This document shows positions 1 through 55,166 of a DNA stretch of 64,000 bases, piece by piece. The stretch comes from Auanema rhodensis. Lineage: Eukaryota > Animalia > Nematoda. The position numbers and the translations under genes were made by a program. The notes below the pieces were generated by a model. The model worked only from the letters and a program-made list of their open reading frames with translations, made no database searches and had not been told where the DNA came from. The DNA lies in NCBI GenBank assembly GCA_964057225.1, contig OZ059898.1, forward strand, positions 9,796,001 to 9,860,000, in the 5' to 3' direction. Position 1 is the first letter of the stretch; every line of letters begins with the position of its first letter.

Positions 1-538
1 AGAAAGAGACGAAAAAAGTTGAACGATTTGAAGAGAATTGTAAGTTTTAGAAAAGAATTAAAGTTTAGCTTTGTCTACTATTTAATGATTATCGGCTGAA
101 ATATGGTGACAGTTTTTTTTTAAAAGTTTCCATGATTAAGATTAATCAAAGAAAAAAAAATCAAAGAGAAACACTTCTTGTTTACTAATTTGATTATAAC
201 ACTTGAAATTCCAACAAAAGTAAAGTAAAACTGTTAAAGCGAGTAAAACTGTTGAACAATTTGAAGACAATTGTAAGTTGAAGAATAAAATTAAAGTTTA
301 GCTCTCTCTACTATTAACTGAATGTCGGCTAAAATATGGTAACAGTTTTTATTAAAAGTTTCCATGATTAAGATTAAACAAAGAAAAAAAATCAAAGAGA
401 AACACTCCTTGTTTACTAATTTGATTATAACACTTGAAATTCCAACAAAAGTAAAATAAAACTGTGAAAGCGGGTAAAACTGTTGAACTAAAACAGTCTT
501 TATAAAATATAAATGATATTTTTTTATAAAAGTGAAGT

Positions 539-609
539 TGCATCGGCCGGGAATCGAACCCGGGTTGCCCGCGTGGCAGGCGAGCATTCTACCACTGAAC
601 CACCGATGC
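539..609 (-). tRNA. tRNA-Gly(GCC), variable-loop variant (GGGCAACCC)
   Basis: 71-nt cloverleaf GCATCGGTGGTTCAGTGGTAGAATGCTCGCCTGCCACGCGGGCAACCCGGGTTCGATTCCCGGCCGATGCA with A/B boxes, followed by TTTT. Confidence 0.93.
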
Positions 610-1631
610 TTCGAAAATGTTAGATTGTTTCCGAAAAATTATGAAAAGTCAAGTTCTACTGATTTGAAGAAAATTGTAAGTTTTAGAAAATAATTAAAAA
701 TAAGTTCTCTCTACTATTAACTGATTGTCGGCTAAAATATGGTAACAGTTTTTATAAAAAGTTTCCATGATTAGGATTAAACAAAAAAAAGAATTAAAGA
801 GAAACACTTTTTGTTTACTTATTTGATTATAATACTTGAAATTCCAAAAACAGTAGAATAAAATTGAGAAATCGACAAAAACAGTTGAACGATTTGAAGA
901 GAATTGTAAGTTTTAGAAAAGAATTAAAGTTCAGCTATCTCTACTATTAACTGACTATCGGCTAGAATAAGGTAACAGTTTTTATTGAAAGTTTCCATGA
1001 TTAAGATTAAACAAAAAAAAAATCAGAGAGAAACACTTCTTGTTTACTTAATTGATTATAATACTTGAAATTCCAAAAACAGTAAAATAAAATTGAGAAA
1101 GCGACAAAAACAGTTGAACGATTTGAAGACAATTGTAAGTTTAAGAAAAGAATTAAAGTTTAGCTTTGTCTACTATTAACTGATTATCGGCTGAAATATG
1201 GTGACAGTTTTTTTTTAAAAGTTTTCATGATTAGGATTAAACAAAAAAAAGAATCAAAAAGAAACACTTCTTGTTTACTTATTTGATTATAACACTTGAA
1301 ATTCCAACAAAAGTAAAGTAAAACTGTTAAAGCGAGTAAAACTGTTGAACGATTTGAAGACAATTGTAAGTTGAAGAAAAAAATTAAAGTTTAGCTCTCT
1401 CTACTATTAACTGAATGTCGGCTAAAATATGGTAACAGTTTTTATTAAAAGTTTCCATGATTAAGATTAAACAAAGAAAAAAAATCAAAGAGAAACACTC
1501 CTTGTTTACTAATTTGATTATAACACTTGAAATTCCAACAAAAGTAAAATAAAACTGTGAAAGCGGGTAAAACTGTTGAACTAAAACAGTCTTTATAAAA
1601 TATAAATGATATTTTTTTATAAAAGTGAAGT

Positions 1632-1702
1632 TGCATCGGCCGGGAATCGAACCCGGGTCGCCCGCGTGGCAGGCGAGCATTCTACCACTGAACCACCGAT
1701 GC
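1632..1702 (-). tRNA. tRNA-Gly(GCC)
   Basis: Full 71-nt cloverleaf, anticodon GCC, downstream T run. Confidence 0.96.
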
Positions 1703-2741
1703 TTCGAAAATGTTAGATTGTTTCCGAAAAATTATGAAAAGTCAAGTTCTACTGATTTGAAGAGAATTGTAAGTTTTAGAAAAGAATTAAAGTTCAGCTA
1801 TCTCTACTATTAACTGATTATCGGCTAAAATAAGGTAACAGTTTTTATTGAAAGTTTCCATGATTAAGATTAAACAAAGAAAAAGAATCAAAGAGAAACA
1901 CTTCTTGTTTACTTATTTGATTATAATACTTGAAATTCCAAAAACAGTAGAATAAAATAGAGAAAGCGACGAAAAAAGTTGAACAATTTGAAGAGAATTG
2001 TAAGTTTTAGAGAAGAATTAAAGTTCAGCTATCTCTACTATTAACTGATTGTCGGCTAAAATAAGGTAACAGTTTTTATTGAAAGTTTCCATGATTAAGA
2101 TTAAACAAAGAAAAAAATCAAAGAGAAACACTTCTTGTTTACTTACTTGATTATAATACTTGAAATTCCAAAAACAGTAAAATAAAATTGAAAAAGCGAC
2201 AAAAACAGTTGAACGATTTGAAGACAATTGTAAGTTGAAGAATAAAATTAAAGTTTAGCTCTCTCTACTATTAACTGAATGTCGGCTAAAATATGGTAAC
2301 AGTTTTTATTAAAAGTTTCCATGATTAAGATTAAACAAAGAAAAAAAATCAAAGAGAAACACTTCTTGTTTACTTATTTGATTATAATACTTGAAATTCC
2401 AAAAACAGTAGAATAAAATAGAGAAAGAGACGAAAAAAGTTGAACGATTTGAAGAGAATTGTAAGTTTTAGAAAAGAATTAAAGTTTAGCTTTGTCTACT
2501 ATTTAATGATTATCGGCTGAAATATGGTGACAGTTTTTATTGAAAGTTCCATGATTAAGATTAAACAAAAAAAAAATCAGAGAGAAACACTTCTTGTTTA
2601 TTTATTTGATTATAATACTTGAAATTCCAAGAACAGTAGAATAAAATAGAGAAAGCGACGAAAAAAGTTGAACGATTTGAAGAGAATTGTAAGTTTTAGA
2701 AAAGAATTACAGTTCAGCTATCTCTACTATTAACTGATTAT

Positions 2742-2869
2742 CAGCTAAAATAAGGTAACAGTTTTTATTAAAGCGAGTAAAACTGTTGAACGATTTGAAG
2801 ACAATCGGCTAAAATAAGGTAACAGTTTTTATTAAAGCGAGTAAAACTGTTGAACGATTTGAAGAAAAT
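2742..2869. repeat. Tandem duplication of an internally deleted ~64-bp satellite monomer
   Basis: C(A/G)GCTAAAATAAGGTAACAGTTTTTATTAAAGCGAGTAAAACTGTTGAACGATTTGAAGA appears twice in direct succession. Confidence 0.85.
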
Positions 2870-3369
2870 TGTAAGTTCTAGAAAATAATTAAAAATAAGT
2901 TCTCTCTACTATTAACTGATTGTCGGCTAAATTATGGTAACAGTTTTTATGAAAAGTTTCCATGATTAGGATTAAACAAAGAAAAAAGAATCAAAGAGAA
3001 ACACTTCTTGTTTACTTATTTGATTATAATACTTGAAATTCCGAAAACAGTAGAATAAAATGAAGAAAGCGACAAAAACAGTTGAACGATTTGAAGACAA
3101 TTGTAAGTTGAAGAAAAAAATTAAAGTTTAGCTCTCTCTACTATTTAATGATTGTCGGCTAGAATATGGTAACAGTTTTTATTAAAAGTTTCCATGTTTA
3201 AGATTGAACAAAAAAAAAAAAATCCAAGAGAAACACTTCTTGTTTACTAATTTGATTATAACACTTGAAAATCCAACAAAAGTAAAATAAAACTGTAAAA
3301 GCGAGTAAAACTGTTGAAATAAAACAGTTTTTATTAAATATAAATGATATTTTTTTATAAAAATGAAGT

Positions 3370-3440
3370 TGCATCGGCCGGGAATCGAACCCGGGTCGCC
3401 CGCGTGGCAGGCGAGCATTCTACCACTGATCCACCGATGC
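3370..3440 (-). tRNA. tRNA-Gly(GCC), D-stem variant (GGATCAG)
   Basis: Same cloverleaf with a T12A change that breaks one D-stem pair. Confidence 0.88.
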
Positions 3441-4697
3441 TTCGAAAATGTTAGATTGTTTCCGAAAAATTATGAAAAGTCAAGTTCTACTGATTTGAAG
3501 AGAATTGTAAGTTTTAGAAAAGAATTAAAGTTCAGCTATCTCTACTATTAACTGATTATCGGCTAAAATAAGGTAACAGTTTTTATTGAAAGTTTCCATG
3601 ATTAAGATTAAACAAAGAAAAAGAATCAAAGAGAAACACTTCTTGTTTACTTATTTGATTATAATACTTGAAATTCCAAAAACAGTAGAATAAAATAGAG
3701 AAAGCGACGAAAAAAGTTGAACGATTTGAAGAGAATTGTAAGTTTTAGAGAAGAATTAAAGTTCAGCTATCTCTACTATTAACTGATTGTCGGCTAAAAT
3801 AAGGTAACAGTTTTTATTGAAAGTTTCCATGATTAAGATTAAACAAAGAAAAAAATCAAAGAGAAACACTTCTTGTTTACTTACTTGATTATAATACTTG
3901 AAATTCCAAAAACAGTAAAATAAAATTGAAAAAGCGACAAAAACAGTTGAACGATTTGAAGACAATTGTAAGTTGAAGAATAAAATTAAAGTTTAGCTCT
4001 CTCTACTATTAACTGAATGTCGGCTAAAATATGGTAACAGTTTTTATTAAAAGTTTCCATGATTAAGATTAAACAAAGAAAAAAAATCAAAGAGAAACAC
4101 TTCTTGTTTACTTATTTGATTATAATACTTGAAATTCCAAAAACAGTAGAATAAAATAGAGAAAGAGACGAAAAAAGTTGAACGATTTGAAGAGAATTGT
4201 AAGTTTTAGAAAAGAATTAAAGTTTAGCTTTGTCTACTATTTAATGATTATCGGCTGAAATATGGTGACAGTTTTTTTTTAAAAGTTTCCATGATTAAGA
4301 TTAATCAAAGAAAAAAAAATCAAAGAGAAACACTTCTTGTTTACTAATTTGATTATAACACTTGAAATTCCAACAAAAGTAAAGTAAAACTGTTAAAGCG
4401 AGTAAAACTGTTGAACAATTTGAAGACAATTGTAAGTTGAAGAATAAAATTAAAGTTTAGCTCTCTCTACTATTAACTGAATGTCGGCTAAAATATGGTA
4501 ACAGTTTTTATTAAAAGTTTCCATGATTAAGATTAAACAAAGAAAAAAAATCAAAGAGAAACACTCCTTGTTTACTAATTTGATTATAACACTTGAAATT
4601 CCAACAAAAGTAAAATAAAACTGTGAAAGCGGGTAAAACTGTTGAACTAAAACAGTCTTTATAAAATATAAATGATATTTTTTTATAAAAGTGAAGT

Positions 4698-4768
4698 TGC
4701 ATCGGCCGGGAATCGAACCCGGGTTGCCCGCGTGGCAGGCGAGCATTCTACCACTGAACCACCGATGC
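4698..4768 (-). tRNA. tRNA-Gly(GCC), variable-loop variant (GGGCAACCC)
   Basis: Identical to the copy at 539-609. Confidence 0.93.
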
Positions 4769-5791
4769 TTCGAAAATGTTAGATTGTTTCCGAAAAATTA
4801 TGAAAAGTCAAGTTCTACTGATTTGAAGAAAATTGTAAGTTTTAGAAAATAATTAAAAATAAGTTCTCTCTACTATTAACTGATTGTCGGCTAAAATATG
4901 GTAACAGTTTTTATAAAAAGTTTCCATGATTAGGATCAAACAAAAAAAAGAATTAAAGAGAAACACTTTTTGTTTACTTATTTGATTATAATACTTGAAA
5001 TTCCAAAAACAGTAGAATAAAATTGAGAAATCGACAAAAACAGTTGAACGATTTGAAGAGAATTGTAAGTTTTAGAAAAGAATTAAAGTTCAGCTATCTC
5101 TACTATTAACTGACTATCGGCTAGAATAAGGTAACAGTTTTTATTGAAAGTTTCCATGATTAAGATTAAACAAAAAAAAAATCAGAGAGAAACACTTCTT
5201 GTTTACTTACTTGATTATAATACTTGAAATTCCAAAAACAGTAAAATAAAATTGAGAAAGCGACAAAAACAGTTGAACGATTTGAAGACAATTGTAAGTT
5301 TAAGAAAAGAATTAAAGTTTAGCTTTGTCTACTATTAACTGATTATCGGCTGAAATATGGTGACAGTTTTTTTTTTAAAGTTTTCATGATTAGGATTAAA
5401 CAAAAAAAAGAATCAAAAAGAAACACTTCTTGTTTACTTATTTGATTATAACACTTGAAATTCCAACAAAAGTAAAGTAAAACTGTTAAAGCGAGTAAAA
5501 CTGTTGAACGATTTGAAGACAATTGTAAGTTGAAGAAAAAAATTAAAGTTTAGCTCTCTCTACTATTTAATGATTGTCGGCTAGAATATGGTAACAGTTT
5601 TTATTAAAAGTTTCCATGTTTAAGATTGAACAAAGAAAAAAAAATCCAAGAGAAACACTTCTTGTTTACTAATTTGATTATAACACTTGAAAATCCAACA
5701 AAAGTAAAATAAAACTGTAAAAGCGAGTAAAACTGTTGAAATAAAACAGTTTTTATTAAATATAAATGATATTTTTTTATAAAAATGAAGT

Positions 5792-5862
5792 TGCATCGGC
5801 CGGGAATCGAACCCGGGTCGCCCGCGTGGCAGGCGAGCATTCTACCACTGAACCACCGATGC
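5792..5862 (-). tRNA. tRNA-Gly(GCC)
   Basis: Full 71-nt cloverleaf. Confidence 0.96.
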
Positions 5863-7113
5863 TTCGAAAATGTTAGATTGTTTCCGAAAAATTATGAAAA
5901 GTCAAGTTCTACTGATTTGAAGAGAATTGTAAGTTTTAGAAAAGAATTAAAGTTCAGCTATCTCTACTATTAACTGATTATCGGCTAAAATAAGGTAACA
6001 GTTTTTATTGAAAGTTTCCATGATTAAGATTAAACAAAGAAAAAGAATCAAAGAGAAACACTTCTTGTTTACTTATTTGATTATAATACTTGAAATTCCA
6101 AAAACAGTAGAATAAAATAGAGAAAGCGACGAAAAAAGTTGAACGATTTGAAGAGAATTGTAAGTTTTAGAGAAGAATTAAAGTTCAGCTATCTCTACTA
6201 TTAACTGATTGTCGGCTAAAATAAGGTAACAGTTTTTATTGAAAGTTTCCATGATTAAGATTAAACAAAGAAAAAAATCAAAGAGAAACACTTCTTGTTT
6301 ACTTACTTGATTATAATACTTGAAATTCCAAAAACAGTAAAATAAAATTGAAAAAGCGACAAAAACAGTTGAACGATTTGAAGACAATTGTAAGTTGAAG
6401 AATAAAATTAAAGTTTAGCTCTCTCTACTATTAACTGAATGTCGGCTAAAATATGGTAACAGTTTTTATTAAAAGTTTCCATGATTAAGATTAAACAAAG
6501 AAAAAAAATCAAAGAGAAACACTTCTTGTTTACTTATTTGATTATAATACTTGAAATTCCAAAAACAGTAGAATAAAATAGAGAAAGAGACGAAAAAAGT
6601 TGAACGATTTGAAGAGAATTGTAAGTTTTAGAAAAGAATTAAAGTTTAGCTTTGTCTACTATTTAATGATTATCGGCTGAAATATGGTGACAGTTTTTAT
6701 TGAAAGTTCCATGATTAAGATTAAACAAAAAAAAATCAGAGAGAAACACTTCTTGTTTACTTACTTGATTATAATACTTGAAATTCCAAAAACAGTAAAA
6801 TAAAATTGAGAAAGCGACAAAAACAGTTGAACGATTTGAAGACAATTGTAAGTTGAAGAATAAAATTAAAGTTTAGCTCTCTCTACTATTAACTGAATGT
6901 CGGCTAAAATATGGTAACAGTTTTTATTAAAAGTTTCCATGATTAAGATTAAACAAAGAAAAAAAATCAAAGAGAAACACTTCTTGTTTACTAATTTGAT
7001 TATAACACTTGAAATTCCAACAAAAGTAAAATAAAACTGTGAAAGCGGGTAAAACTGTTGAACTAAAACAGTCTTTATAAAATATAAATGATATTTTTTT
7101 ATAAAAGTGAAGT

Positions 7114-7184
7114 TGCATCGGCCGGGAATCGAACCCGGGTCGCCCGCGTGGCAGGCGAGCATTCTACCACTGAACCACCGATGC
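7114..7184 (-). tRNA. tRNA-Gly(GCC)
   Basis: Full 71-nt cloverleaf. Confidence 0.96.
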
Positions 7185-7979
7185 TTCGAAAATGTTAGAT
7201 TGTTTCCGAAAAATTATGAAAAGTCAAGTTCTACTGATTTGAAGAAAATTGTAAGTTTTAGAAAATAATTAAAAATAAGTTCTCTCTACTATTAACTGAT
7301 TATCGGCTGAAATATGGTGACAGTTTTTTTTTAAAAGTTTCCATGATTAAGATTAAACAAAGAAAAAAAATCAAAGAGAAACACTTCTTGTTTACTTATT
7401 TGATTATAATACTTGAAATTCCAAAAACAGTAGAATAAAATTGAGAAATCGACAAAAACAGTTGAACGATTTGAAGAGTATTGTAAGTTTTAGAAAAGAA
7501 TTAATGTTCAGCTATCTCTACTATTAACTGACTATCGGCTAGAATAAGGTAACAGTTTTTATTAAAAGTTTCCATGATTAAGATTAAACAAAGAAAAAAA
7601 ATCAAAGAGAAACACTTCTTGTTTACTTACTTGATTATAATACTTGAAATTCCAAAAACAGTAAAATAAAATTGAGAAAGCGACAAAAACAGTTGAACGA
7701 TTTGAAGACAATTGTAAGTTTAAGAAAAGAATTAAAGTTTAGCTTTGTCTACTATTAACTGATTATCGGCTGAAATATGGTGACAGTTTTTTTTTAAAAG
7801 TTTTCATGATTAGGATTAAACAAAAAAAAGAATCAAAAAGAAACACTTCTTGTTTACTTATTTGATTATAACACTTGAAATTCCAACAAAAGTAAAATAA
7901 AACTGTGAAAGCGGGTAAAACTGTTGAACTAAAACAGTCTTTATAAAATATAAATGATATTTTTTTATAAAAGTGAAGT

Positions 7980-8050
7980 TGCATCGGCCGGGAATCGAAC
8001 CCGGGTCGCCCGCGTGGCAGGCGAGCATTCTACCACTGAACCACCGATGC
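7980..8050 (-). tRNA. tRNA-Gly(GCC)
   Basis: Full 71-nt cloverleaf; its 5' end is 62 bp from the BEL insertion point. Confidence 0.96.
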
Positions 8051-8112
8051 TTCGAAAATGTTAGATTGTTTCCGAAAAATTATGAAAAGTCAAGTTCTAC
8101 TGATTTGAAGAG

Positions 8113-8959
8113 TGTCGCGATAAGCGAGTGAGTTTGTATAAATTTTATCTTCAACAATTGTTTTATTTGTCTCTCCTGTTACCCGTCGCTGAGGAAGTAT
8201 ACGAAGTCTATACTTGTGATAGTTGGTCCACCCAAACCGTATTTAATATAGAAACAACATTACTCTTTCAAGTTCAAGTTTCTTTTATCCAACTCAGTTA
8301 CATAACACATAACCTTTTGTACAGGCTCTAAAATTTATTGTATCTGTAACAAGATAACCTAAACACACCATTGTACAATAAACTAATAGATGTTAATCAG
8401 CGTTTAAAGTCCAGATGTGAACATGTATATAAGGATGCAGCTCATGTTTCTCCTATATTCCATGAAAATGGAAGATATTGTCTCGAATATAATTGAGAAT
8501 GCTTCCTTTGAGGAAGAGCTCAAAAAATATTCCCATCTACCTAACACTGCTGCCAATCTGAGGCAACTAATTGTGCTTGAAAAGAGGCTCTACGAGCACC
8601 TAGCTAGCGCGGTGAACCATCTATCCGAACGACTGGACAATATTCAACATTCGTTAAATCTGAAACTAGACAATTTGACCATTCAGACTGCTCCTAAAGC
8701 TTCATGTGTATTCTGCAATAAACCGACAGCTGATGGGCACCGTACTGCGGCCTGTCCGATTTATCCTTCCTCACCGGAACGCACTCTCCGTCTTCATGAA
8801 CTGGGGTTATGCATCAGATGTTTGAATCAAAAACATCCAGCGATTTGCGAGGTATCCTGCTATAGATGTAAGGCGGATACGCATCATGGAGTGGTTTGTG
8901 GTGATATAAAACGTAAAAGACCTTTGTAGGCCTTCTTCTCATTCCCGCATTGCCGGGAG
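8113..8959 (+). mobile_element. BEL unit 0: doubly deleted remnant (68 bp of LTR + ~85 bp env fragment + 3' region)
   Basis: 8113-8180 equals the LTR start; 8181-8265 matches env ~16409-16495; ~8274 onward matches ~17629 onward. Confidence 0.9.
8417..8929 (+). CDS. BEL 3' accessory ORF: coiled-coil plus three Cys/His zinc knuckles (copy in unit 0)
   Basis: CVFC-x7-H-x4-C, CIRC-x4-H-x3-C, CYRC-x4-HH-x3-C and C-terminal KRKR. The track start is GTG, so the real start is probably a downstream ATG. Confidence 0.8.
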   Translation: MNMYIRMQLMFLLYSMKMEDIVSNIIENASFEEELKKYSHLPNTAANLRQLIVLEKRLYEHLASAVNHLSERLDNIQHSLNLKLDNLTIQTAPKASCVFCNKPTADGHRTAACPIYPSSPERTLRLHELGLCIRCLNQKHPAICEVSCYRCKADTHHGVVCGDIKRKRPL

Positions 8960-9310
8960 TGTCGCGATAAGCGAGTGAGTTTGTATAAATTTTATCTTCA
9001 ACAATTGTTTTATTTGTCTCTCCTGTTTTCTCCCTCTCTCTCTCTCTCTCTCTCTCCCCTTTCTTCTTTCTTGTAACTTCCTAAGTAATTTTTATCCATA
9101 CCACATGTTGTGTTATACATGTGGCATGACTAACTCTTTGTTTCAGGCTGACGACCGCCCACGAGAAGAGATCAGTCTTACATTTTCAACGTTCGCAGTC
9201 AGTGATTTTATTCCGTGCTTGTCTTGTTAATTCATCAATAAACCCTTTTCTACATATTCGCTTTGTGTTTTACTTCCAACCATACTATACACTTGTGGTA
9301 TATCGCCACA
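8960..9310 (+). repeat. BEL LTR (351 bp), shared between units 0 and 1
   Basis: TGTCGCGATA...TATCGCCACA imperfect terminal inverted repeats; preceded by GCCGGGAG; contains (CT)n and AATAAA at 9237-9242. Confidence 0.96.
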
Positions 9311-9313
9311 AAT

Positions 9314-9382
9314 TGGTGCATCGGCTAGTTTAGATCTTAGCCGCTTTAAGTCCCGCGTGGCAGGTGAGATACAAGTCGAACC
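9314..9382 (+). promoter_or_regulatory. Primer binding site for tRNA-Gly(GCC) plus two further tRNA-complementary boxes
   Basis: TGGTGCATCGGC (9314-9325) pairs with ...GCCGAUGCA-CCA; CCCGCGTGGCAGGTGAG (9352-9368) pairs with the anticodon arm; AGTCGAACC (9374-9382) pairs with the T loop. Confidence 0.92.
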
Positions 9383-9598
9383 AAGCGTGTTTGTGCAAAA
9401 AACATACTTAATAAAAATCGTGGCGATCATAAGTCCACGTCAAGTCACACCAAACAGACTTGAACAATAAGCAAACTCTGAAATTAGAAACAGAGGTTTC
9501 AATTTCCTTACGTTCACATATACTGTGATCACCAAACAAACAAAGAAAAAAGAAAACAAAAAAGGAATATAAGCATTATTCCTACATCTACAACAAAA

Positions 9599-12500
9599 AT
9601 GTCACTCCTTTTTGTCAATCATATCAAACAATCTAACCAGTTTCTTGGAGAACTGCTTACACGATACGAGATGGAAGTGAAGGACCTTCCTGGTATTCTG
9701 GTAGATTGCGACTTCCACACTGAGGAAGAAGAGGAAACCCTCTCTTGCCTTATCATTCGCTGGACAAAAGTCCAACACCAATTCAAAGAATCGTTGAAAA
9801 ATCATCAAGATAACGAGAAAAAATTCCAAAAATTTTACGAAGCATCAGACAAAACGCTTCGTAAAGCATTAGACGAACAGTACATCGCCTTCACATCCGA
9901 TGAAGACTTTGAACCCAACATTAAAAAGGTTCAAAACGCCATTATTGAGCTTGACGAACACATCATGAAAGCCGAACGCATACTTAGAAAGCTGAGAAAA
10001 ACGCTTCATAAGAATGAATCTGAGCACAACAGCAATTGCTCAACAGAAAACAATGAAACAGAAAACAAATCGAATGATCAATTTCTGGAAATTATCAAGT
10101 CATTCCTACACATCCAACAAACTAGCATCCAAAAACCAGCGATGTCGCTACCTACATTTGATGGCAAACCAGAGAACTTCAAATCATTCTGGGGCCGTTT
10201 TGATAGACTTGTTCATGATAATGAACAGTTTACAACCTTAGAAAAGGTAAACCTACTCTGTGAAAGCCTCAAAGGCGATTCACAAATAGCAATCAGAGGA
10301 ATAGAACCCTCTGCTCAAAATTATGAGCTCATGCGTGAAGCATTAGTTTCTGAATTTGGAGACTATTCGTCGGATATCAACTCTCTTTTAACACAACTAC
10401 GTAATTTGAGATTTGCAAGCAATAATGCAAAATCATGTAAAGAAACATTTGGGGAAACCAAGGCACTTATCAGGCAAATTGAAGCAGCCGGAGCTACAGT
10501 ATCCCGCGAAATGTGTACCGCGATGATTCTCAACAAATTCCCATACCACATCGTGGAAGACATTCTAATTTATCCAAACAACTACCATTCCACTAAAGAA
10601 ATGCTGACAGCTGTAGACCACAAAATCTATTCCTTTTTTCTAAAAGAACAAACAAGAAATAGTCATGAACAAAAGTTTCGAAATCCCAAAGAGAATGTCA
10701 CATCTGTAGCACATAAAGAAAACTCCGTAGAACAACGGAAAACCCAAACTTGGCCATGTGTTTTCTGCGACTCATCCAAACATCGCTTTTATCATTGCAC
10801 CACATTTGAAACACCAGAGAAAAGAAGACACCGCATCCGCGGAAAGGCCATCTGTTGGATTTGTTTTTCCGAGAAACACAAAAGTTCCGAATGCAGAAAA
10901 CAAAAATGTCGAAATTGCCAAGGAGACCATAATTCCTCCTTGTGCTCACAAGGAAGAAAAAACGTGCAAAATATCCAAAAAGATAAAGAAACTCCCACAA
11001 TTAAAAAAGATCAGGCTTTACTGATCACCACAGAAGAATTATTGAATAAAAAAACAACAGAATATAAACAAGAATCTGACACTAATAATCGAATCCCTAC
11101 TGAGGCACTTAATGCACCAGTATCGCTTAATCACATTGCCGACACACATAATATTGAAGAAAGTCAAGTAATATTACGAACAGCAATGGCGAACATATAC
11201 AACCACAATAGTAAAAAATATGAGCAAGTACGCATGCTCATAGATGAAGGATCCATGAGATCTTTTATATCCAAGGACTTATCCACTAAGTTAGGATTGC
11301 CCATCCTTGGTTCTCAAAAGAAAACCTTTTACGGTATCGGAGCATTGTCCGAAACGCACGAAGTTCAGGACGTAAAGGTAATTATTGGAACCTCAAGTGG
11401 ATCCCTTATCGTAACAAAACTATTCACCAAACCCATGTTAACCACACCCATACGTTGTCCAAAACTATCTAAAGAAGACTTGAAATTTATAAAGACAAGA
11501 AAAATAAAATTAACCAATCCACAAACAAACGGAGAATCATTTACTCCGGATATACTGATAGGTATGGATAGATACAAACTGTTCATGCATTTAAACGAAG
11601 AAACCGAACTCCCTTCACGTATGAGATTGAAAAATTCGGTATTCGGCCACATGATACATGGAGAAGCTCCTCTTCCCGATGATAATACACAACAAGAAGT
11701 AATATTATGCTCTACAGTAGAAGAAATAACAAAAGAAACCTCTCATAAAGAACTCCTCACTAATCTGTTTGAACTGGATTCTATCGGCATCAATACAGAA
11801 AATGCCAAAGCAGACCGCACTATTGATTACTATGAAGAATACTCAAAAGATATAAAAATTGAGAACAACCGCATTATTGCACCGTTCCCGTTAGAAAATA
11901 ACTTCAAAAATCTTAAAAACAACAAAATGCCCGCGTACCATAGATTCGTATCCCTATGGCGAAAGTTACTGCACAATCCAGAAATGCTCTCACACTATAC
12001 TACAACCATTGAAAGTTACCTCAAAGATAACATTGTCGAACAAATTCCCAACAATCACCAGGAGCCTTTAGAGTTTTATATGCCCCACCATGGGGTTTGG
12101 AAGCCCAGCAAGGCTAACCCTCTCAGAATCGTTTTTGACGCCTCCGCTAAACAGAAAGACAGCCCATCGTTGAATGAGATAATACACACAGGACGATCAT
12201 TTATCACATATATACACGACATCATGATCTCCTGCAGAACAAGACCAATATTAATAACATGCGATATCAAAGCCGCATTTTTACAAATACAACTGACAGA
12301 GAATCACAAAAATCTGTGCAAATTCTTTTGGATAAAAAACAAAGAATACCCAATATCTCACAATAATATCATAACCCTTCGATTCAACAGATTACCGTTC
12401 GGTATCACTGCATCCCCCAGCGTATTGAACATGGGCATAAAATGGTTCTTAGAATCAAAAGTAGACAACCCATTAGCTATGGAAATACTGAACAACTTAT

Positions 12501-13036
12501 ACGTTGACAATATCATTCTTACAGCAAATACAACAGCAGAAGCTATAAAGAAATGTAAAGAAACCCAAAAACTATTTACAGAAATAAACATGCATGTTCG
12601 CGAATTCTTGTCAAACGACGAACAAGTAATACAGAACCTTCCTGAAGAAGACAGATATCCGAACATGACAACCAAAATACTTGGCATATCTTTTAATAAA
12701 GAACACGACTCCTTCATTATCCCAATAAAAATAACAACGACTCACACAAGTTACACCAAGAGAATTCTACTCAGTCAGCTACACTCAATATTTGATCCCA
12801 TTGGATTAGCAGCACCATTACTGTTACCTCTCAAACTTATCTTGCGAGAAATCATAAACACAAAATTATCATGGGACCAACCCATTGAATCAGATAATAT
12901 CAAACAATGGGAACAACATATTAATCACATTAACAATCAGCAATTGACCATGAAAAGATATTTTAAATTCTCTGTTGTTCATATTTCCAAACAAACGAGC
13001 AGATTAGTTCTCTGCTCAACGGTAAATCCCGCATAG
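9599..13036 (+). CDS. BEL unit 1 Gag-protease-RT polyprotein, ending out of frame inside RNase H
   Basis: LPTFDG capsid motif, three Cys/His knuckles, protease LIDEGSMRSFI, RT motifs RIVFDAS, DIKAAFLQI, LPFG, YVDN, and TKR..LS....IFDPIG. Confidence 0.93.
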   Translation: MSLLFVNHIKQSNQFLGELLTRYEMEVKDLPGILVDCDFHTEEEEETLSCLIIRWTKVQHQFKESLKNHQDNEKKFQKFYEASDKTLRKALDEQYIAFTSDEDFEPNIKKVQNAIIELDEHIMKAERILRKLRKTLHKNESEHNSNCSTENNETENKSNDQFLEIIKSFLHIQQTSIQKPAMSLPTFDGKPENFKSFWGRFDRLVHDNEQFTTLEKVNLLCESLKGDSQIAIRGIEPSAQNYELMREALVSEFGDYSSDINSLLTQLRNLRFASNNAKSCKETFGETKALIRQIEAAGATVSREMCTAMILNKFPYHIVEDILIYPNNYHSTKEMLTAVDHKIYSFFLKEQTRNSHEQKFRNPKENVTSVAHKENSVEQRKTQTWPCVFCDSSKHRFYHCTTFETPEKRRHRIRGKAICWICFSEKHKSSECRKQKCRNCQGDHNSSLCSQGRKNVQNIQKDKETPTIKKDQALLITTEELLNKKTTEYKQESDTNNRIPTEALNAPVSLNHIADTHNIEESQVILRTAMANIYNHNSKKYEQVRMLIDEGSMRSFISKDLSTKLGLPILGSQKKTFYGIGALSETHEVQDVKVIIGTSSGSLIVTKLFTKPMLTTPIRCPKLSKEDLKFIKTRKIKLTNPQTNGESFTPDILIGMDRYKLFMHLNEETELPSRMRLKNSVFGHMIHGEAPLPDDNTQQEVILCSTVEEITKETSHKELLTNLFELDSIGINTENAKADRTIDYYEEYSKDIKIENNRIIAPFPLENNFKNLKNNKMPAYHRFVSLWRKLLHNPEMLSHYTTTIESYLKDNIVEQIPNNHQEPLEFYMPHHGVWKPSKANPLRIVFDASAKQKDSPSLNEIIHTGRSFITYIHDIMISCRTRPILITCDIKAAFLQIQLTENHKNLCKFFWIKNKEYPISHNNIITLRFNRLPFGITASPSVLNMGIKWFLESKVDNPLAMEILNNLYVDNIILTANTTAEAIKKCKETQKLFTEINMHVREFLSNDEQVIQNLPEEDRYPNMTTKILGISFNKEHDSFIIPIKITTTHTSYTKRILLSQLHSIFDPIGLAAPLLLPLKLILREIINTKLSWDQPIESDNIKQWEQHINHINNQQLTMKRYFKFSVVHISKQTSRLVLCSTVNPA

Positions 13037-13098
13037 CACCCAAAAATAAGACCACAATTCCTCGATTAGAATTATTAGCCATCCGCTTAGCAGTACGA

Positions 13099-16000
13099 AT
13101 GGCATTAGCTATTGTAACCATATGCCCGAAAGTGGCAAAAGTCAACATTGTAAGCGATAGCAACATCGCGCTATCATGGATTATTTCTCTAAAATCCCTC
13201 CCACTGTTCATTAAAAATCAAACAAACATTATAAATAAACAGCTACACCAAATCAAACAAGTATGTTGCAATGTAGAATTACATCATGTACAAACCTCGT
13301 ACAATACTGCAGACATCGGATCCCGAGGTGCAGACATCGAGAAACTACAAGATTCCGACTGGATAAAGGGTCCACATTGGTTAACTAAACTTTCCGCTCA
13401 TAACCCTCTGACATCATTCGGCTCGCCTAAGAACTCTAACAGGAATAACGCAGAATCAGAATCGGAGCATCACAATGTGGTCCACATAATTATAGACAAT
13501 CTTCCAACCAATGATATTTGGAACATTCGTGAAAACTATGATGATGTGATCAAAACAATGACAACCGTAGGAAAATTATTCAAAAAATGGTTTCTTAAAG
13601 TCCATCCTAACAACGCCAACAAGTTGCAAAAAATAAAACATCTCACATCAACAGACACGAATACTGTTGAAGACATCAACATAATTGAAAAAATTTTGAA
13701 GAGTAACAGCCAATCTAATATGAGCCTCGATGAGCTACAGCAAAGAAATATAAATTTAAAATTCTTCAAAGATACATGGGACATTTATCGCGTAAGAAGT
13801 CGTTTGCAAAATACTCTTCTTCCCGAAGAGACAAAAAACCCTATATTCCTTCTCAAAACAAACCCCATAGTTAAAAAACTGATCAACAAAATACACAAAG
13901 ATAATAATCATCAAGGCAAAAATTTCACGCTTATTCAACTCAGACAAAAGTTCTATATACCAAAAATAACCGGAGTCATTAAGCAAACATTGAAAAACTG
14001 TGTGACATGTAAAAGATTTCAATCACATCCTTATGAATTACCAGATATGCCATCGCTACCAAAAGACAGAGCAATTCTTACAAGAGCATTCTTTTCAACA
14101 GGGTGTGATCTTATGGGCCCCTTCACCCTTCGAAATGGGTCTAAAGTCCATATTTGTCTGTTTACATGCATGACAACTAGAGCGGTTCACTTAGAGGTAG
14201 TCACCAATCAATCCACAGTTGCCTTTATGAATGCATTTAATAGATTTATTTCACGCAGAGGTACTCCAGAAATTATGCGCAGTGACTGCGCAGGAAACTT
14301 TATTCTGAGCTCAAAAATATTAGAAACCCTTGAAAAAACCTCGGATTACAATGAAAGTAGCATACTAAACACATTAGCTCAAAGAAAAATTAAATGGATA
14401 TACAACACTCCGCTATCTCCTTGGAAAGGAGGTTGTTGGGAACGCTTAGTAGGTGTCACCAAATCATCCCTCAAAAAATGCTTCGTTCCTAGTCAAATGT
14501 CACTAGATGATTTACACACAGCTATTGTAAAAATAGAAGCCATAATTAATACACGCCCACTCACTCATCCACACCCAGATAATTTAGATGCCTTACCCAT
14601 AAGACCAATTGATTTTTTAACATCAGCAATAAAGTTTTCATTACCAGAAAACAATGATAACACTCATATATTCGATATTCACAGCGATATCCAAACGATT
14701 CAATCGACAGAACAAGCGCTAGAAGCTCTTCAGTTATCAGAAGACTCAGCGTCTAAATTCTGGACACGTTTCCAGGAGGAGTATCTAACTAGTTTAAAAG
14801 ACATTTTCAAACATAAAAACAAGAGAAAAAATCACACAAATCTCTTTCCTCACAAGGATGAAATAGTAATAATACAAAACGACATGTCGCCACGAGGAAC
14901 ATGGAAACTAGGTCGCATTATTGAAACAATTACTAGTTCAGATGGCAACATACGTTCAGCAAAAGTTGCAACAAGCAACGGAAACATAATTACTCGATCC
15001 ATCAATCAGCTCTATCCACTAGAGATAAGATGCAACACTAGCAACAACAAAATCATAGAAGACAACTCACACATAGTCCAAGAAAATAATAGCTCAACAG
15101 ATAGAATAGCACATACTGATACCGTATTAGACAACATACACTCCGATCATCATATAGAACATACAGATGAAACAATACATGAGAACAATAACATAAATGA
15201 TAGCAACCATAATTACGATATTGCATATGAATCAGACAACTCTCAACATGATAATACATACACTCCAGAAACAGAGAATAATGAGGATGCAACAAACGAT
15301 CGACCTCAAAATAAAACAAAACTATCATCAGTGAAAACAGCAAAATATACAGAACAAGATGAGGTCACTGAGAAGGAAAATATAAAAGCCTTCCCACTAA
15401 AAATGTCCTATGCCACACACCAAAGAAAAAATAAAATAAACCCAAAAATAGCAGCTGACATAATGAAAGCCCTTTCATTACCGATTATAATTACTTCGAC
15501 ATATGCCGAAGAAATCAATAGTTGCAAGGACTCTAACATGTTCACCACAAAACTTATAGCGAATCCTCATTGCTCCCCAGAAATGGCAACATGGACAGTG
15601 CTAATAACCATTATGGCAGTTACCCTCATAGTCTCTTGTCTATGCCGCATGGGCTACAGCCAATATAGATATAAGACATGGTCCAAAAACACTCAAACCA
15701 TGCTCAACATCATGAAATTAAAACATAAAACAATCTCCGAACAAGAAGATCATGAAACTGATCAAAAAATAACAGAAGACCACAATGATACGTTGCAATT
15801 AAAACAAACGAACACACAAGACGCTAATATTGTGGATCATGAAACCTTTCAAAAGCATATTTACCCTATTTTAAACCATACGAGAAAGCCACCAAAATTC
15901 TCTCTCTTTACTAGAGGGTCGCAAACATCTTTACCATCGTTACTGGCAATCATCTTGGCTTTATGTATTGGAAGCTGCAGTTCATGTTCCGATGTTCATG

Positions 16001-17475
16001 TTCAACACTTCGTTAACATACGATGCGATGACAACTTAGCTTGTTATCACGAATACAGTCAAGATATCATATTTTCTCCCGGAACAAAACAATTATGCAT
16101 TACCATAACGCATTCTAATCATGAAATTGGTCAATTTAAAATAACTAAACTATATACTGAACATGTCTGCCAAAAGAATACTAGATACTTCACTAGACAG
16201 ACAATCGTCAACATATTGAGCATATTACGATGCCGTCACCGGGGCTCGTGTGACGGAACATGTGAAACTAACTCGCTCCATAATAAAATCGAGGAACTAC
16301 AACCATATACGTTCCCTTCACAATCAGGTTGCTTCACATCGTCAGCGAGATTTTACACATGTCCTATGATTTGGACAGATCCTTGTCTTTTCTACAAAAT
16401 AGAGCATATACCCGTCACTGAGGAAGTATACGAAGTCTATACTTGTGATAGTTGGTCCACCCAAACCGTATTTAATATAGAAACAACATTACTCCAGCAA
16501 AAAAATAATTACAATATCACTCTACAACCTTACACGAAAAATCGTGAACAACTTTTCAATATAACAACGTTATCACAATCACAACCTCCTCCAGAAATGT
16601 ACACAAAATTATTTTTTTCCTCCAAAGAAAACACGTACATTACGGATATACACACAAAGGGAATAATTCAATGTGCAACAGAGGAAGCCGCATTAAAACA
16701 TTTTAATAACTGTACAGTATCCTCATTCTGCCCTTGCACATTCAATAGATTTGATGAAATAAAATGTAGGTGTGATACCCCTACTTTTGAAAAAATGTCC
16801 AATACATCAGACATAAAATCTCCTAACCAAAACTTTAAAACTAAAGATAACACGTTATCATTCTCTACGAATTTAGACGAAAATTTAGTTACGGTCGATT
16901 CATCCCTATTCTTAAACTCAGTGATTTTCTCCAACAATTTGCCTTGCGCACCTGCCCTGACAAAACTATCAGGTTGCTACTCCTGCGGGCAGGGTGCATT
17001 CGCAGAATTCCAATGCCTTACGGCAGAAGAAACATGGATTTCTATCGAATGTCAAAAAGAAGTATTCATGATAAAATGCTCTCCAAAAGTAGCAATCACA
17101 AAAGTAACAATGAAAAGAGAAAATTCTCAGATTGATGAATTATGCTATACCACATGCGACAATAAAAAAATTAAGATCATTATTAAAGGAATATTACATC
17201 ACATAGCAAGCATAGATGAAATAAACGAAAGTGACTCAAGTAAGGGTACAGAATCCAAATCCATTGACTTCGCTCCAATCTTCAAGTTAATTTTATCAAA
17301 GTTGGGAATCATATTGATAGGCGTTGCAATAACCGCCACCATAGGATATGTGGCATGTACACCCATCATGTACTGTGTAGTTTTGAATACAGTCTTAACC
17401 ACACAATGGATAGCTACCAGGATATTCACACTGTGGATAAAATCAAAAGCCTTATTTCGGGATCAAAGATTTTAA
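13099..17475 (+). CDS. BEL unit 1 RNase H C-part, integrase and phlebovirus Gc-like envelope
   Basis: NTADIGSRG, HHCC zinc finger, DDE (CDLMGP / SDCAGNF / WERLVG), hydrophobic segments, then Cys-rich Gc from ~15985 (RCRHRGSC, CLFY, GCYSCGQGA) and a C-terminal TM. The frame is open from 12967. Confidence 0.92.
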   Translation: MALAIVTICPKVAKVNIVSDSNIALSWIISLKSLPLFIKNQTNIINKQLHQIKQVCCNVELHHVQTSYNTADIGSRGADIEKLQDSDWIKGPHWLTKLSAHNPLTSFGSPKNSNRNNAESESEHHNVVHIIIDNLPTNDIWNIRENYDDVIKTMTTVGKLFKKWFLKVHPNNANKLQKIKHLTSTDTNTVEDINIIEKILKSNSQSNMSLDELQQRNINLKFFKDTWDIYRVRSRLQNTLLPEETKNPIFLLKTNPIVKKLINKIHKDNNHQGKNFTLIQLRQKFYIPKITGVIKQTLKNCVTCKRFQSHPYELPDMPSLPKDRAILTRAFFSTGCDLMGPFTLRNGSKVHICLFTCMTTRAVHLEVVTNQSTVAFMNAFNRFISRRGTPEIMRSDCAGNFILSSKILETLEKTSDYNESSILNTLAQRKIKWIYNTPLSPWKGGCWERLVGVTKSSLKKCFVPSQMSLDDLHTAIVKIEAIINTRPLTHPHPDNLDALPIRPIDFLTSAIKFSLPENNDNTHIFDIHSDIQTIQSTEQALEALQLSEDSASKFWTRFQEEYLTSLKDIFKHKNKRKNHTNLFPHKDEIVIIQNDMSPRGTWKLGRIIETITSSDGNIRSAKVATSNGNIITRSINQLYPLEIRCNTSNNKIIEDNSHIVQENNSSTDRIAHTDTVLDNIHSDHHIEHTDETIHENNNINDSNHNYDIAYESDNSQHDNTYTPETENNEDATNDRPQNKTKLSSVKTAKYTEQDEVTEKENIKAFPLKMSYATHQRKNKINPKIAADIMKALSLPIIITSTYAEEINSCKDSNMFTTKLIANPHCSPEMATWTVLITIMAVTLIVSCLCRMGYSQYRYKTWSKNTQTMLNIMKLKHKTISEQEDHETDQKITEDHNDTLQLKQTNTQDANIVDHETFQKHIYPILNHTRKPPKFSLFTRGSQTSLPSLLAIILALCIGSCSSCSDVHVQHFVNIRCDDNLACYHEYSQDIIFSPGTKQLCITITHSNHEIGQFKITKLYTEHVCQKNTRYFTRQTIVNILSILRCRHRGSCDGTCETNSLHNKIEELQPYTFPSQSGCFTSSARFYTCPMIWTDPCLFYKIEHIPVTEEVYEVYTCDSWSTQTVFNIETTLLQQKNNYNITLQPYTKNREQLFNITTLSQSQPPPEMYTKLFFSSKENTYITDIHTKGIIQCATEEAALKHFNNCTVSSFCPCTFNRFDEIKCRCDTPTFEKMSNTSDIKSPNQNFKTKDNTLSFSTNLDENLVTVDSSLFLNSVIFSNNLPCAPALTKLSGCYSCGQGAFAEFQCLTAEETWISIECQKEVFMIKCSPKVAITKVTMKRENSQIDELCYTTCDNKKIKIIIKGILHHIASIDEINESDSSKGTESKSIDFAPIFKLILSKLGIILIGVAITATIGYVACTPIMYCVVLNTVLTTQWIATRIFTLWIKSKALFRDQRF

Positions 17476-18667: not shown

Positions 18668-18955
18668 AATTGGTGCATCGGCTAGTTTAGATCTTAGCCG
18701 CTTTAAGTCCCGCGTGGCAGGTGAGATACAAGTCGAACCAAGCGTGTTTGTGCAAAAAACATACTTAATAAAAATCGTGGCGATCATAAGTCCACGTCAA
18801 GTCACACCAAACAGACTTGAACAATAAGCAAACTCTGAAATTAGAAACAGAGGTTTCAATTTCCTTACGTTCACATATACTGTGATCACCAAACAAACAA
18901 AGAAAAAAGAAAACAAAAAAGGAATATAAGCATTATTCCTACATCTACAACAAAA

Positions 18956-21953: not shown

Positions 21954-22352
21954 TGTAATATCCTTAAGTTGGATATTAATATTCCATGATTGACCCTTAG
22001 ATTGATGTGTTGTAAAAGAAACAATAAGATTTGAGGAAGAGAGAAAGATTTATTATAAATAAAAAACATTTAAACAATAAACAAATAAAGATAAAGATAA
22101 GTCCGCCAACTGAAGATTCAGTTGAATGGCAAGCTTATATAGCGAATGTTATCAGCATTTTCCACGAAAGGTTATAAGTTGTCAATGACAATTATAACTA
22201 TCTCGGAAAATGCTGAAGCTGCAAAATATAACTGATAACATAATACACTAAGACAAGAAACTAGAATTATAAAATATAAAATATAAAACACAGAATAAAG
22301 AAATACATAAAAATTATAGAAAGAATAAAGTACATAATTATAAAGTATAACA
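21954..22352 (-). repeat. Gypsy A 3' LTR
   Basis: Direct repeat of 30937-31335. Confidence 0.96.
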
Positions 22353-22409
22353 TGCTACCGCTCTTGAAGTCCTGTGTCCTCACAGGTATGCATAAGGTTT
22401 CCAAAATTT

Positions 22410-29936: not shown

Positions 29937-30923
29937 GTGTGTTGGCGTTTTTTCGTCGTCCGATGGACTTAAATCGTTGTCAAACGAGTCGTCACTATCG
30001 GGAAAAGGAAATCGAGAAATACGATTTCTCTTGTCTCTTAATCTTTGAGAGGTACGGAAAGGCGTATCCGTATAATTATTCTTGGAGGTTGCCGTTTTGG
30101 AAAAGGAGGAAAGTCAGAACAATCTACAATGTAAAATAGTGGAATAAGTTAGTAAACAAGATAAGAATATGAATAGTTAATAGTGAATAAATTAGTGAAT
30201 AACGTGAAAAAAAAAATCAAAGAAAAAAAAGATATATAATAATATGGGTTGAAGATTAATTAATTAATGAACTCATACAAAAACAAACTATAGAGAGGAA
30301 AAAAAAAAAGATGTGAATATAATTAATTGTTAAGATGATGATAGGATATGATTATGTGACAATGTGATTCATAAATTAGAGAAGTGAGTATGGCGGACAA
30401 ATCAAAATCTCAATTGTTACTGAATAACAATGAATTACCAAACAAGGCATCTTTCAAATTCCAAAGTCTTTGTTTCAACTTGAATCAACAATCAAAAAAT
30501 TATGAGAGGAAGGTTTAAATTCAAATATGACAAATGATACAGCGGATGTTATTTTCTTACAGTGGCCATTCTGTTAGTACAAACTTGTAATCTTTATCAA
30601 AAATATCGCAAATTGACTTTATTAAGGTCCAATTTTGCTTATATCAAACAGCTTTTCCATTTCCAAAAAATATATATTTTTCGCCACAATGAAAAATCAA
30701 AAGTACAACTGCGCAGAAACAAAAAGAAATCGAAAAGTTGGCCAATTCAGTATCTCACCCTTGCGCAAAATATCAACCCTGTTTATTAAAAAAATGAGTG
30801 AGACCCTTCGTACTGAATTGGAAAGAGAGGTGGTAGCCCAGGGAAATAGCTCAAAAAAATTCTCTTTAACTGAATGATAATTCATAATTTAATCGAGTTC
30901 GAAAAATCGTAAAAAGATTCTAA

Positions 30924-30936
30924 GGTGGAACCTCCA
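30924..30936 (-). promoter_or_regulatory. Gypsy A PBS, complementary to the tRNA-Gln 3' end
   Basis: TGGAGGTTCCACC directly follows the 5' LTR; metazoan tRNA-Gln ends ...GGUGGAACCU-CCA. Confidence 0.85.
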
Positions 30937-31335
30937 TGTAATATCCTTAAGTTGGATATTAATATTCCATGATTGACCCTTAGATTGATGTGTTGTAAAA
31001 GAAACAATAAGATTTGAGGAAGAGAGAAAGATTTATTATAAATAAAAAACATTTAAACAATAAACAAATAAAGATAAAGATAAGTCCGCCAACTGAAGAT
31101 TCAGTTGAATGGCAAGCTTATATAGCGAATGTTATCAGCATTTTCCACGAAAGGTTATAAGTTGTCAATGACAATTATAACTATCTCGGAAAATGCTGAA
31201 GCTGCAAAATATAACTGATAACATAATACACTAAGACAAGAAACTAGAATTATAAAATATAAAATACAAAACACAGAATAAAGAAATACATAAAAATTAT
31301 AGAAAGAATAAAGTACATAATTATAAAGTATAACA
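30937..31335 (-). repeat. Gypsy A 5' LTR
   Basis: Direct repeat of 21954-22352, adjacent to the PBS. Confidence 0.96.
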
Positions 31336-55157: not shown

Positions 55158-55166
55158 AATAATAAT

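Follow-up and report, generated by a model that had tools for sequence, protein, structure and literature searches.

The stretch of the nematode Auanema rhodensis genome analysed here (the window: 64,000 nucleotides (nt), contig OZ059898.1, positions 9,796,001-9,860,000, within a 181-Mb genome) carries tRNA-Gly(GCC) genes in two blocks, at 1-8112 and 55165-60165. Between both blocks lie three near-identical tandem units (9355 bp) of one long terminal repeat (LTR) element, family F1, which are broken up by two Ty3/Gypsy-type elements (21954-31335 and 41787-53434). Our subject is the leader of F1, in which a short primer-binding site (PBS, box 1) is followed by a second stretch, box 2, complementary to the anticodon arm of tRNA-Gly(GCC), the primer of the element (Table 1).

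The coding region of F1 gives Pfam matches to DUF1759, reverse transcriptase (RT), Pao peptidase A17, integrase, DUF5641 and a phlebovirus G2 envelope (env) domain, the last of these at the C-terminus (PF07245, E 3e-42, plus PF19019). This set of domains makes F1 a Cer13/Atlas-like belpaovirus (gag-pol plus phlebovirus-G2 env), and on a tree of RT and ribonuclease H (RNase H) sequences it groups with BEL families. Contigs from two runs guessed to be RNA stop at 9250/9254, and the R/U5 border is therefore likely to lie at about 9250-9254.

The PBS of F1 begins 3 nt past the LTR. The initial annotation had proposed that it pairs over 12 nt with the CCA end of tRNA-Gly(GCC), and this was confirmed for 9314-9325 against the window's own tRNA genes, with a predicted duplex energy of -23.2 kcal/mol. 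The exact 12-mer is present at 88 genomic sites, against 0 in the reversed control; about 46 of the 88 are F1 and the others belong to several further LTR families. A CGGCTA/TAGCCG hairpin overlapping box 1, also proposed from the start, was located with its arms at 9322-9327 and 9338-9343, and its stems are unvarying in 33 F1 leader haplotypes. Next to the PBS, and including part of this hairpin, comes a 26-nt spacer of non-tRNA sequence, which takes the place of the 20-nt complement of the T arm and variable loop. It is not a mutated T-arm complement, as it shows no similarity to one (P 0.95).

Box 2 pairs with tRNA nt 26-42, that is, with exactly the anticodon stem-loop, through 16 Watson-Crick pairs and one G:U pair, as had been claimed. 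The predicted energy of this duplex is -38.2 kcal/mol. We reject a chance match, given that about 0.01 17-mers this close to the tRNA are expected in the window. Box 2 was found in about 46 genomic F1 copies. When the leader is folded together with the tRNA, the predicted energy is -80.9 kcal/mol, against -60.0 kcal/mol for the two apart, and the PBS, box 2 and a D-arm-like stretch are paired. We also considered whether the block could be a degenerate tRNA gene or captured flanking tRNA DNA. Both are rejected: the block opens with the complement of CCA, which is absent from the genes, it is situated within the element, downstream of the 5' LTR, and it is present in every dispersed copy. The boxes recur, as initially noted, at 18671+ and 37412+, where they are identical over the claimed span, and over 141 aligned bases the three tandem leaders show a single difference, one base in the LTR end, upstream. 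Since the window's three F1 copies are recent tandem copies, they provide no independent evidence.

The initial annotation described a tripartite site, with a third box, AGTCGAACC (9374-9382), directed at the T loop. This box does pair with tRNA nt 50-58 as stated (8 Watson-Crick pairs and one G:U, -11.1 kcal/mol predicted), but the match is within chance (P 0.04-0.17) and is not conserved. Shuffling yields a helix as good in 17% of cases for the remaining leader and in 4% for the 30 nt that follow box 2; the G at 9375 is a C in 29 of the 33 leader haplotypes (from about 46 genomic copies), and one F1 subfamily reads GCTCAAACC at this place, so that pairing is broken. In the cofold, it is the D arm, and not the T loop, that the stretch following box 2 is paired with. 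Compared with TACCACT-GAACCA of the D-arm complement, the majority variant TACAACTCGAACCA gives P ~0.01, the T-loop reading giving P ~0.02, and on F1 sequence alone the two readings are inseparable. The cofold and the layout of a Caenorhabditis brenneri element (see below) favour a D-arm box, and 9370-9383 makes better sense as a complement, now decayed, of the D arm of the tRNA (about nt 8-20); the site is not tripartite. In the free leader fold, the minimum free energy structure joins the PBS to the box 3 region, but its z-score is only -1.5 and the pairing is broken in the majority variant, and we rejected this fold.

Taken as a whole, 9314-9383 thus reads as an interrupted, colinear antisense image of tRNA-Gly(GCC): the PBS (nt 63-74), the 26-nt hairpin spacer, box 2 (nt 26-42) and an apparently decayed D-arm complement (about nt 8-20). 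These matches support tRNA-Gly(GCC) as the primer and box 2 as a genuine second complementarity.

Table 1. Features of the F1 element, second tRNA complementarities in related families, and antisense tRNA tails (window coordinates unless marked otherwise)
Feature	Position	Strand	Remarks
Nearest tRNA-Gly(GCC) gene, primer species	7980-8050	-	1 of 10 in window, ~550 in genome
5' LTR of first F1 tandem copy (TGT...ACA)	8960-9310	+	start matches truncated LTR piece at 8113
AATAAA in F1 LTR	9237-9242	+	
TTCTAC, remnant of R/U5 D-arm box in F1	9248-9253	+	F7 box AGCATTCTACCACTGA intact at homologous place just after AATAAA
Box 1, 12-nt PBS TGGTGCATCGGC	9314-9325	+	complement of tRNA-Gly(GCC) nt 63-71 plus CCA
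Hairpin over PBS	9322-9343	+	10-nt loop with palindrome AGATCT (9332-9337)
Box 2 CCCGCGTGGCAGGTGAG	9352-9368	+	17-nt complement of whole anticodon stem-loop, tRNA-Gly(GCC) nt 26-42
D-arm-like stretch TACAAGTCGAACCA	9370-9383	+	includes box 3; colinear with box 2; variable within F1
F1 coding region	9599-17475	+	
F1 open reading frame with DUF1759, RT, Pao peptidase A17	9599-13036	+	Pfam matches
F1 open reading frame with integrase, DUF5641, phlebovirus G2 env	13099-17475	+	Pfam matches
PBS, spacer, box 2, D-like block, second tandem copy	18671-18740	+	
PBS, spacer, box 2, D-like block, third tandem copy	37412-37481	+	
F7 box AGCATTCTACCACTGA	-78 from PBS		tRNA nt 12-27 (16/16)
F6 box TTCTACCACTGTACCA	-189 from PBS		tRNA nt 8-23
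L075-type box TAGCACTGAACCATCATGC	-64 from PBS		tRNA nt 1-20
F9 box TCTACCACTGAACCAACTATGC	-64 from PBS		tRNA nt 1-22 (19/22)
Tails of L072, L076			8-11 nt
Tail of L093			~26 nt
Tail of L101/L102			to tRNA nt 34
Tail of L098			to tRNA nt 33
Tail of L067			to tRNA nt 30
Tail of L109			to tRNA nt 2

Second complementarities in relatives of F1

Scanning the genome with Pfam PF05380 yielded about 15 BEL families, with at least 150 copies in all. F1 has F7 as its nearest kin on the RT/RNase H tree (52% amino-acid identity); F6/F8, F12 and F15 come next. We scanned 200 nt on either side of each PBS against the antisense tRNA, and compared the scores with those of 400 shuffles. LTRs were read for only some families, and F14 (L131) is truncated at its 5' end, so that no leader was obtained. 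Downstream of the PBS, box 2 was not found in at least 10 other tRNA-Gly-primed LTR families of the genome, namely the nearest family F7 and at least nine more. Box 2 at its position is therefore not a general BEL feature, an outcome that the initial annotation itself had named as counting against it. Nor was a second box detected within these 200 nt on either side of the PBS in F2-F5, Fx and Fy. The PBS of F15 is a different one, TGGCGACCACGGCAGGA.

In four BEL lineages (F6, F7, F9/F10 and the L075 type), a second complementarity is found upstream of a PBS of 9-13 nt, inside R/U5. These complements of the D arm or 5' acceptor are 16-22 nt long, and 0 of 400 shuffles reach the score of any of them. 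F6 and F7 have 10-nt versions of the PBS, and the F7 box is identical in two F7 subtypes whose downstream U5 differs. Among four subfamilies of the F9/F10 group, the invariant islands are two, the box (13/13) and the PBS, and only about 10 of the approximately 45 spacer columns are invariant; the pattern CTACCACTG, 35-65 nt, TGGTGCATC has 44 genomic matches, against 0 in the control. The F9 LTR end, ACA, directly abuts the PBS TGGTGCATC, which places the F9 box within U5. This 9-nt PBS overlaps the gag start (L138:218-240; ACA followed by TGGTGCATC, with the frame ATG GTG CAT C), so that F9 has no leader between LTR and gag.

The R/U5 regions of F1 and F7 are homologous (0 of 1000 shuffles reach the alignment score), and at the place of the intact F7 box a TTCTAC remnant is left in F1. 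The two families also have a leader motif in common, GTGGCGA..TAAGTCCA, 70-95 nt past the PBS (window 9419-9440, and L127 for the F7 leader), the remaining leader being unalignable; this motif might act as a signal for packaging or dimerisation. A possible remnant of an older, second antisense tRNA, within 9419-9450 or the F7 leader motif GTGGCGA..TAAGTCCA, proved not to be significant (P 0.28-0.35). We also looked for a tRNA-Gly isodecoder that would match the F7 PBS TGGTGCATCGAC or the PBS of the F1 copy L028 (T to C), and the genome holds no such gene.

Outside A. rhodensis, the second open reading frame (ORF) of F1 matches strongylid and Caenorhabditis BEL proteins, with up to 38% identity; a search with the ORF1 protein returned just 4 distant matches, intact relatives exceeding the length band that was searched. 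All six nematode loci that were fetched have a PBS of the tRNA-Gly(GCC) type. In one of them, a gag-pol-env element of C. brenneri (L132), AATAAA and a U5 of about 60 nt precede a 10-nt PBS, TGGTGCATCGAC, and a 36-nt spacer. After the spacer comes a 13-nt segment, CCGCGTGGCAGGC, exact to tRNA nt 29-41, then 6 nt, then TCTACCGCTGAGC, which matches the D-arm complement at 11 of 13 positions, both changes being A-to-G with G:U pairs kept. Here we take the C. brenneri tRNA-Gly to be the same as that of A. rhodensis in the D and anticodon arms, on the basis of the C. elegans gene. With this assumption, the layout of the C. brenneri element is that of F1: PBS, spacer, anticodon-arm box, D-arm box. 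The element nevertheless groups with F9-F11 on the RT/RNase H tree (support 96/92), far from F1. Either the layout is thus very old and often lost, or it arose twice. In a Necator element, only a 10-nt match was found (P 0.13).

Antisense tRNA tails and the origin and role of box 2

Eight antisense tRNA-Gly tails anchored on the PBS were found in other LTR families (Table 1). Overall they are 8 to 70 nt long, and they are fixed in the germline straight after the PBS. Every tail opens with the CCA complement, which is absent from genes, and in three of them (L067, L072 and L076) the base opposite A58 is A, not T. Over the genome, about 551 sites have the T form at this position and 3 the A form, and these tails account for two of the three; among the approximately 550 tRNA-Gly genes, at most one has the A variant. 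It has been reported that 1-methyladenosine (m1A) followed by U causes dATP misincorporation (PMC4787781), and tRNA-Gly has A58-U59. The CCA start and the A opposite A58 thus identify the tails of L067, L072 and L076 as cDNA of the mature, modified primer. Primer read-through cDNA enters this germline, although read-through past m1A58/U54 has been described as yielding non-complementary dead-end DNA (PMC8599865).

Some properties of the tails deserve mention in their own right. Three independent tails stop in or beside the anticodon loop, at nt 33, 34 and 30, and the sequence past most tails differs from the family's normal leader. At L109 (C6:14145780-14146317), the LTR and PBS are followed by a near-whole antisense tRNA-Gly, an A-run, an inverted leader copy, and a second PBS and leader, which looks like a snap-back rearrangement of reverse transcription. 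At L101/L102 (C6:856987-857697), a unit made of LTR, PBS and a 29-nt tRNA tail is present in tandem, with a 299-bp period, before an otherwise normal element.

Box 2 probably originated when reverse transcription continued into the primer tRNA, the resulting cDNA being fixed in the leader. Antisense tRNA contiguous with the PBS is present only in the tails of other families and in one F1 copy, L028; the F1 leader has no position opposite A58. In L028, the 26-nt spacer is swapped for an exact 20-nt T-arm complement and the T found at 9365 in the family is kept, which fits a plus-strand DNA extended as far as the anticodon arm before landing on box 2.

As to the role of box 2, the following scheme is considered the most likely. 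The tRNA's 3' end would anneal to the PBS and prime minus-strand DNA, and the opened anticodon arm would anneal to box 2, keeping the primer on the genomic RNA, with the T arm left folded and unpaired. The m1A58 of the T arm, unable to pair, would stop plus-strand synthesis. In F1, box 2 would compensate for, or replace, the lost U5 box. We give a probability of about one half to box 2 being a functional second primer contact of the F1 lineage, that is, part of a two-part primer site. Comparison among copies and families shows a real, strong and lineage-specific complementarity to the anticodon arm, in a layout that appears again in a distant element. The general proposal that the primer makes extended contacts gains comparative support from the C. 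brenneri layout and from the D-arm boxes of four BEL lineages; a T-loop contact is not supported. Within F1, variability concerns about 13% of sites in the PBS-proximal 63 nt of the leader, against 32-58% further down. Near-identical copies with an unchanged box 2 are present in reads of two other organisms, which is uninformative, and the stretch is absent from the runs on record as RNA.

Several observations weigh against a functional box 2, or against the origin just proposed for it. In the F1 leader haplotypes, box 2 has 2 variable sites out of 17 and the spacer 4 out of 26, so that box 2 is no quieter than its neighbour, and, F1 being young, with subfamilies 88-89% identical over the LTR end plus leader, conservation of box 2 within the family is weak evidence. 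Some degenerate copies have GTAAG, which introduces an A.C mismatch, and, as tRNA-Gly itself is invariant, true covariation is unscorable. F2-F5 have the same 12-nt PBS as F1 yet no second box within 200 nt on either side: the second contact is not obligatory, and the idea that a short PBS must be compensated is not general. Among related nematode elements, across which a test of the conservation of boxes 2 and 3 had been proposed, that of C. brenneri has anticodon- and D-arm-type boxes, and those of Cylicocyclus, C. nigoni, Ancylostoma caninum and H. contortus have the same primer and no significant second box within 200 nt. Moreover, read-through predicts a tail contiguous with the PBS, and F1 has a 26-nt unrelated spacer instead; simple read-through leaves the spacers of both F1 and the C. 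brenneri element unexplained. Finally, L028 lies 78 bp from a tRNA-Gly(GCC) gene of the same orientation, a neighbour shared by only about 3 of some 44 F1 copies, which makes local templated repair a real rival to read-through in the case of L028.

Part of this evidence speaks for a rival reading, in which box 2 and the D-like stretch are an idle fossil, left by primer-tRNA cDNA after read-through of plus-strand strong-stop synthesis and hitch-hiking in a young and successful family. Read-through tails bearing the m1A58 mark are frequent in the genome, box 2 is confined to F1 within it and is conserved no better than the adjoining spacer, some copies show decay of the D-like part and of box 2 at its 3' end, and F2-F5 replicate with a 12-nt PBS alone. 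Against this reading, the decay is uneven, the T arm being traceless and the anticodon arm 16/17 intact. The same odd layout, with a spacer in place of the T arm, is present in the distant C. brenneri element, other lineages have D-arm boxes that look selected, and F1 has lost a U5 box that its sister family F7 retains. We consider a neutral fossil possible, and less probable than a functional contact.

Two other uses of box 2 appear improbable. It might be a landing pad, a homology site that rescues plus-strand DNA run into the tRNA, or a target of host small RNAs derived from tRNA-Gly. L028 does resemble a rescue product, as its T-arm fill-in returns to the element inside box 2 with the T at 9365 kept, and it has been argued that read-through products fail for want of complementarity (PMC8599865); but this is one copy out of about 46, and it lies beside a tRNA-Gly gene, while selection in the element would disfavour a silencing target. 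Slightly less probable still is the proposal, made in the initial annotation, of an alternative primer site, at which 5' fragments of tRNA-Gly(GCC), cleaved within the anticodon loop or past it, would prime, much as internal regions of tRNAs serve copia and Ty5. A 5' half ending at nt 34/35 would base-pair through its 3' end with the 3' part of box 2, GGCAGGTGAG; copying of such a primer should leave a trace like the colinear D-arm-like stretch that follows box 2, and the three independent tails stop at nt 30-34. Yet the canonical PBS abuts the LTR and is invariant, box 2 reaches nt 42, past a half cut in the loop, all related families prime from the 3' end, and no mark of initiation is found at box 2. 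On balance we find no support for priming by 5' halves.

Returning to a functional contact, one may ask whether dependence on a two-part site is general in those belpaoviruses of nematodes that have tRNA-Gly(GCC) as primer, the site being made of a 9-12 nt PBS and a long box for the D or anticodon arm. The box would be movable (in R/U5 in F6, F7 and F9/F10, downstream in F1 and C. brenneri), and in F1 would have been re-created from primer cDNA after loss of the U5 box. We regard this wider proposal as tentative, and less probable than a role of box 2 in F1 itself.

The F1 array and its surroundings

In the three window copies, gag-pol and pol-env are in different frames (13036-13099; ORFs of 1145 and 1458 amino acids), and many other genomic F1 copies have a single open frame of about 2680 amino acids. 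The tandem array begins with a 67-bp LTR fragment (8113-8180) followed by 3' internal sequence, and finishes with a rearranged piece, 54951-55157 being a repeat of 13702-13908; its ends are therefore not simple LTR ends. In the runs X12 and X14, guessed to be RNA, contigs over 9147-9254 fuse the first 15 nt of the LTR straight to 9147. The junction suggests an expressed relative whose U3 is shorter, or a spliced or deleted form.

tRNA genes were present in the fetched flanks of 26 of 39 F1 loci, usually as tandem arrays (loci L001-L068; window 8050-8113). The closest gene is mostly 16-125 bp from the F1 5' LTR and is most often oriented away from the element, and the kinds represented are Gln, Ala, Asp, Ser, His, Leu, Arg, Glu, Met, Thr, Gly, Pro and Val. 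This looks like integration targeted to genes of RNA polymerase III by a belpaovirus. The tRNA-Gly(GCC) blocks of the window (1-8112 and 55165-60165) are part of a giant array on the same contig, at about 9.61-9.86 Mb, and most of the approximately 551 exact genomic copies of the 3' region of the tRNA-Gly(GCC) gene lie in this region. As for the nested Ty3/Gypsy elements (22410-29936 and 42838-51567, both on the minus strand), they have a fusion glycoprotein domain of the herpes glycoprotein B (gB)/Monjiviricetes type, which sits between gag and protease in one long ORF, and their PBS, TGGAGGTTCCACC, is identical.

Extended primer contacts in other elements

To our knowledge, extended contacts between primer and template are established only for a few model elements (Ty1, Ty3, Gypsy, human immunodeficiency virus type 1 (HIV-1) and Rous sarcoma virus), and their purpose is debated. 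In Ty1, studied by Friant et al., a 10-nt PBS is reportedly accompanied by boxes 0, 1 and 2.1, which are short (6-7 nt) and pair with the T and D arms of initiator tRNA-Met. The topology is that of F1 and of the C. brenneri element, with a short PBS and further boxes downstream that pair with other arms of the tRNA. In contrast to Ty1, F1 has a single 17-nt box covering the whole anticodon arm and skips the T arm; moreover, function was shown for Ty1, whereas F1 is known from sequence.

Ty3 and Drosophila Gypsy combine a 5' PBS of 8-11 nt with a second site for internal tRNA regions (PMC5371799, PMC1635307), which in Gypsy pairs with parts of the anticodon and T stems (PMC1635307). This second site is at the 3' end of the genome, and in Gypsy it is dispensable for cDNA synthesis (PMC5371799, PMC1635307). 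The F1 box differs in being 26 nt downstream of the PBS, and the R/U5 D-arm boxes of F7 and F9 come closer to the Ty3/Gypsy arrangement. In HIV-1, contacts of tRNA-Lys3 beyond the PBS include an A-rich loop with the anticodon and the primer activation signal (PAS) with the T arm (PMC7793103, PMC3185550, PMC11181671). The anticodon region is thus involved there too, and upstream U5 elements pair with the tRNA, a kind of contact that would also be made by the D-arm boxes of F6, F7 and F9. However, HIV-1 has a full 18-nt PBS and short, partly contested additional contacts, as compared with a PBS of 9-12 nt and a second helix of 13-22 nt here. In copia and Ty5, the sole primer site abuts the LTR and is complementary to an internal (anticodon-stem) tRNA region instead of the CCA end; this is not the case in F1, where a canonical CCA-end PBS abuts the LTR and box 2 is 41 nt beyond the LTR end.

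Among the closest known elements are Cer13 of C. elegans and Atlas virus of A. ceylanicum, Belpaoviridae with LTRs and nematode hosts (PMC9094657). Like F1, they encode a gag-pol-env polyprotein with a phlebovirus G2-like env, and F1 has at most 38% amino-acid identity to its best database relative over the integrase part. A primer site is not mentioned in the Atlas virus paper (PMC9094657), and full-text literature searches found no description of an extended primer contact in BEL/Pao elements. F1 differs from the known systems in its BEL/Pao class, in the length of the contacts (13-22 nt), in the coverage of the whole anticodon arm and in the skipping of the T arm.

Read-through past m1A58 as described in the literature (PMC8599865; m1A signature in PMC4787781) is likewise reflected here in PBS-anchored tails with A opposite A58 and in one T-arm fill-in of F1. 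Whereas the literature describes it as a dead end in vitro or in mutant cells, here its products are fixed in the germline, and in F1 they are separated from the PBS by a spacer. With their m1A58 mark, such tails are a natural and rare trace of how reverse transcriptase behaves at the modified bases of its primer. The genome moreover offers a natural comparative series, of about 15 BEL families with one primer, a PBS of 9 to 19 nt and a second box located upstream, downstream or nowhere, in which one may test if a short PBS requires a helper contact. If the dependence on a movable two-part site and its re-creation in F1 are real, new cis-acting signals for replication would arise from a by-product of reverse transcription.
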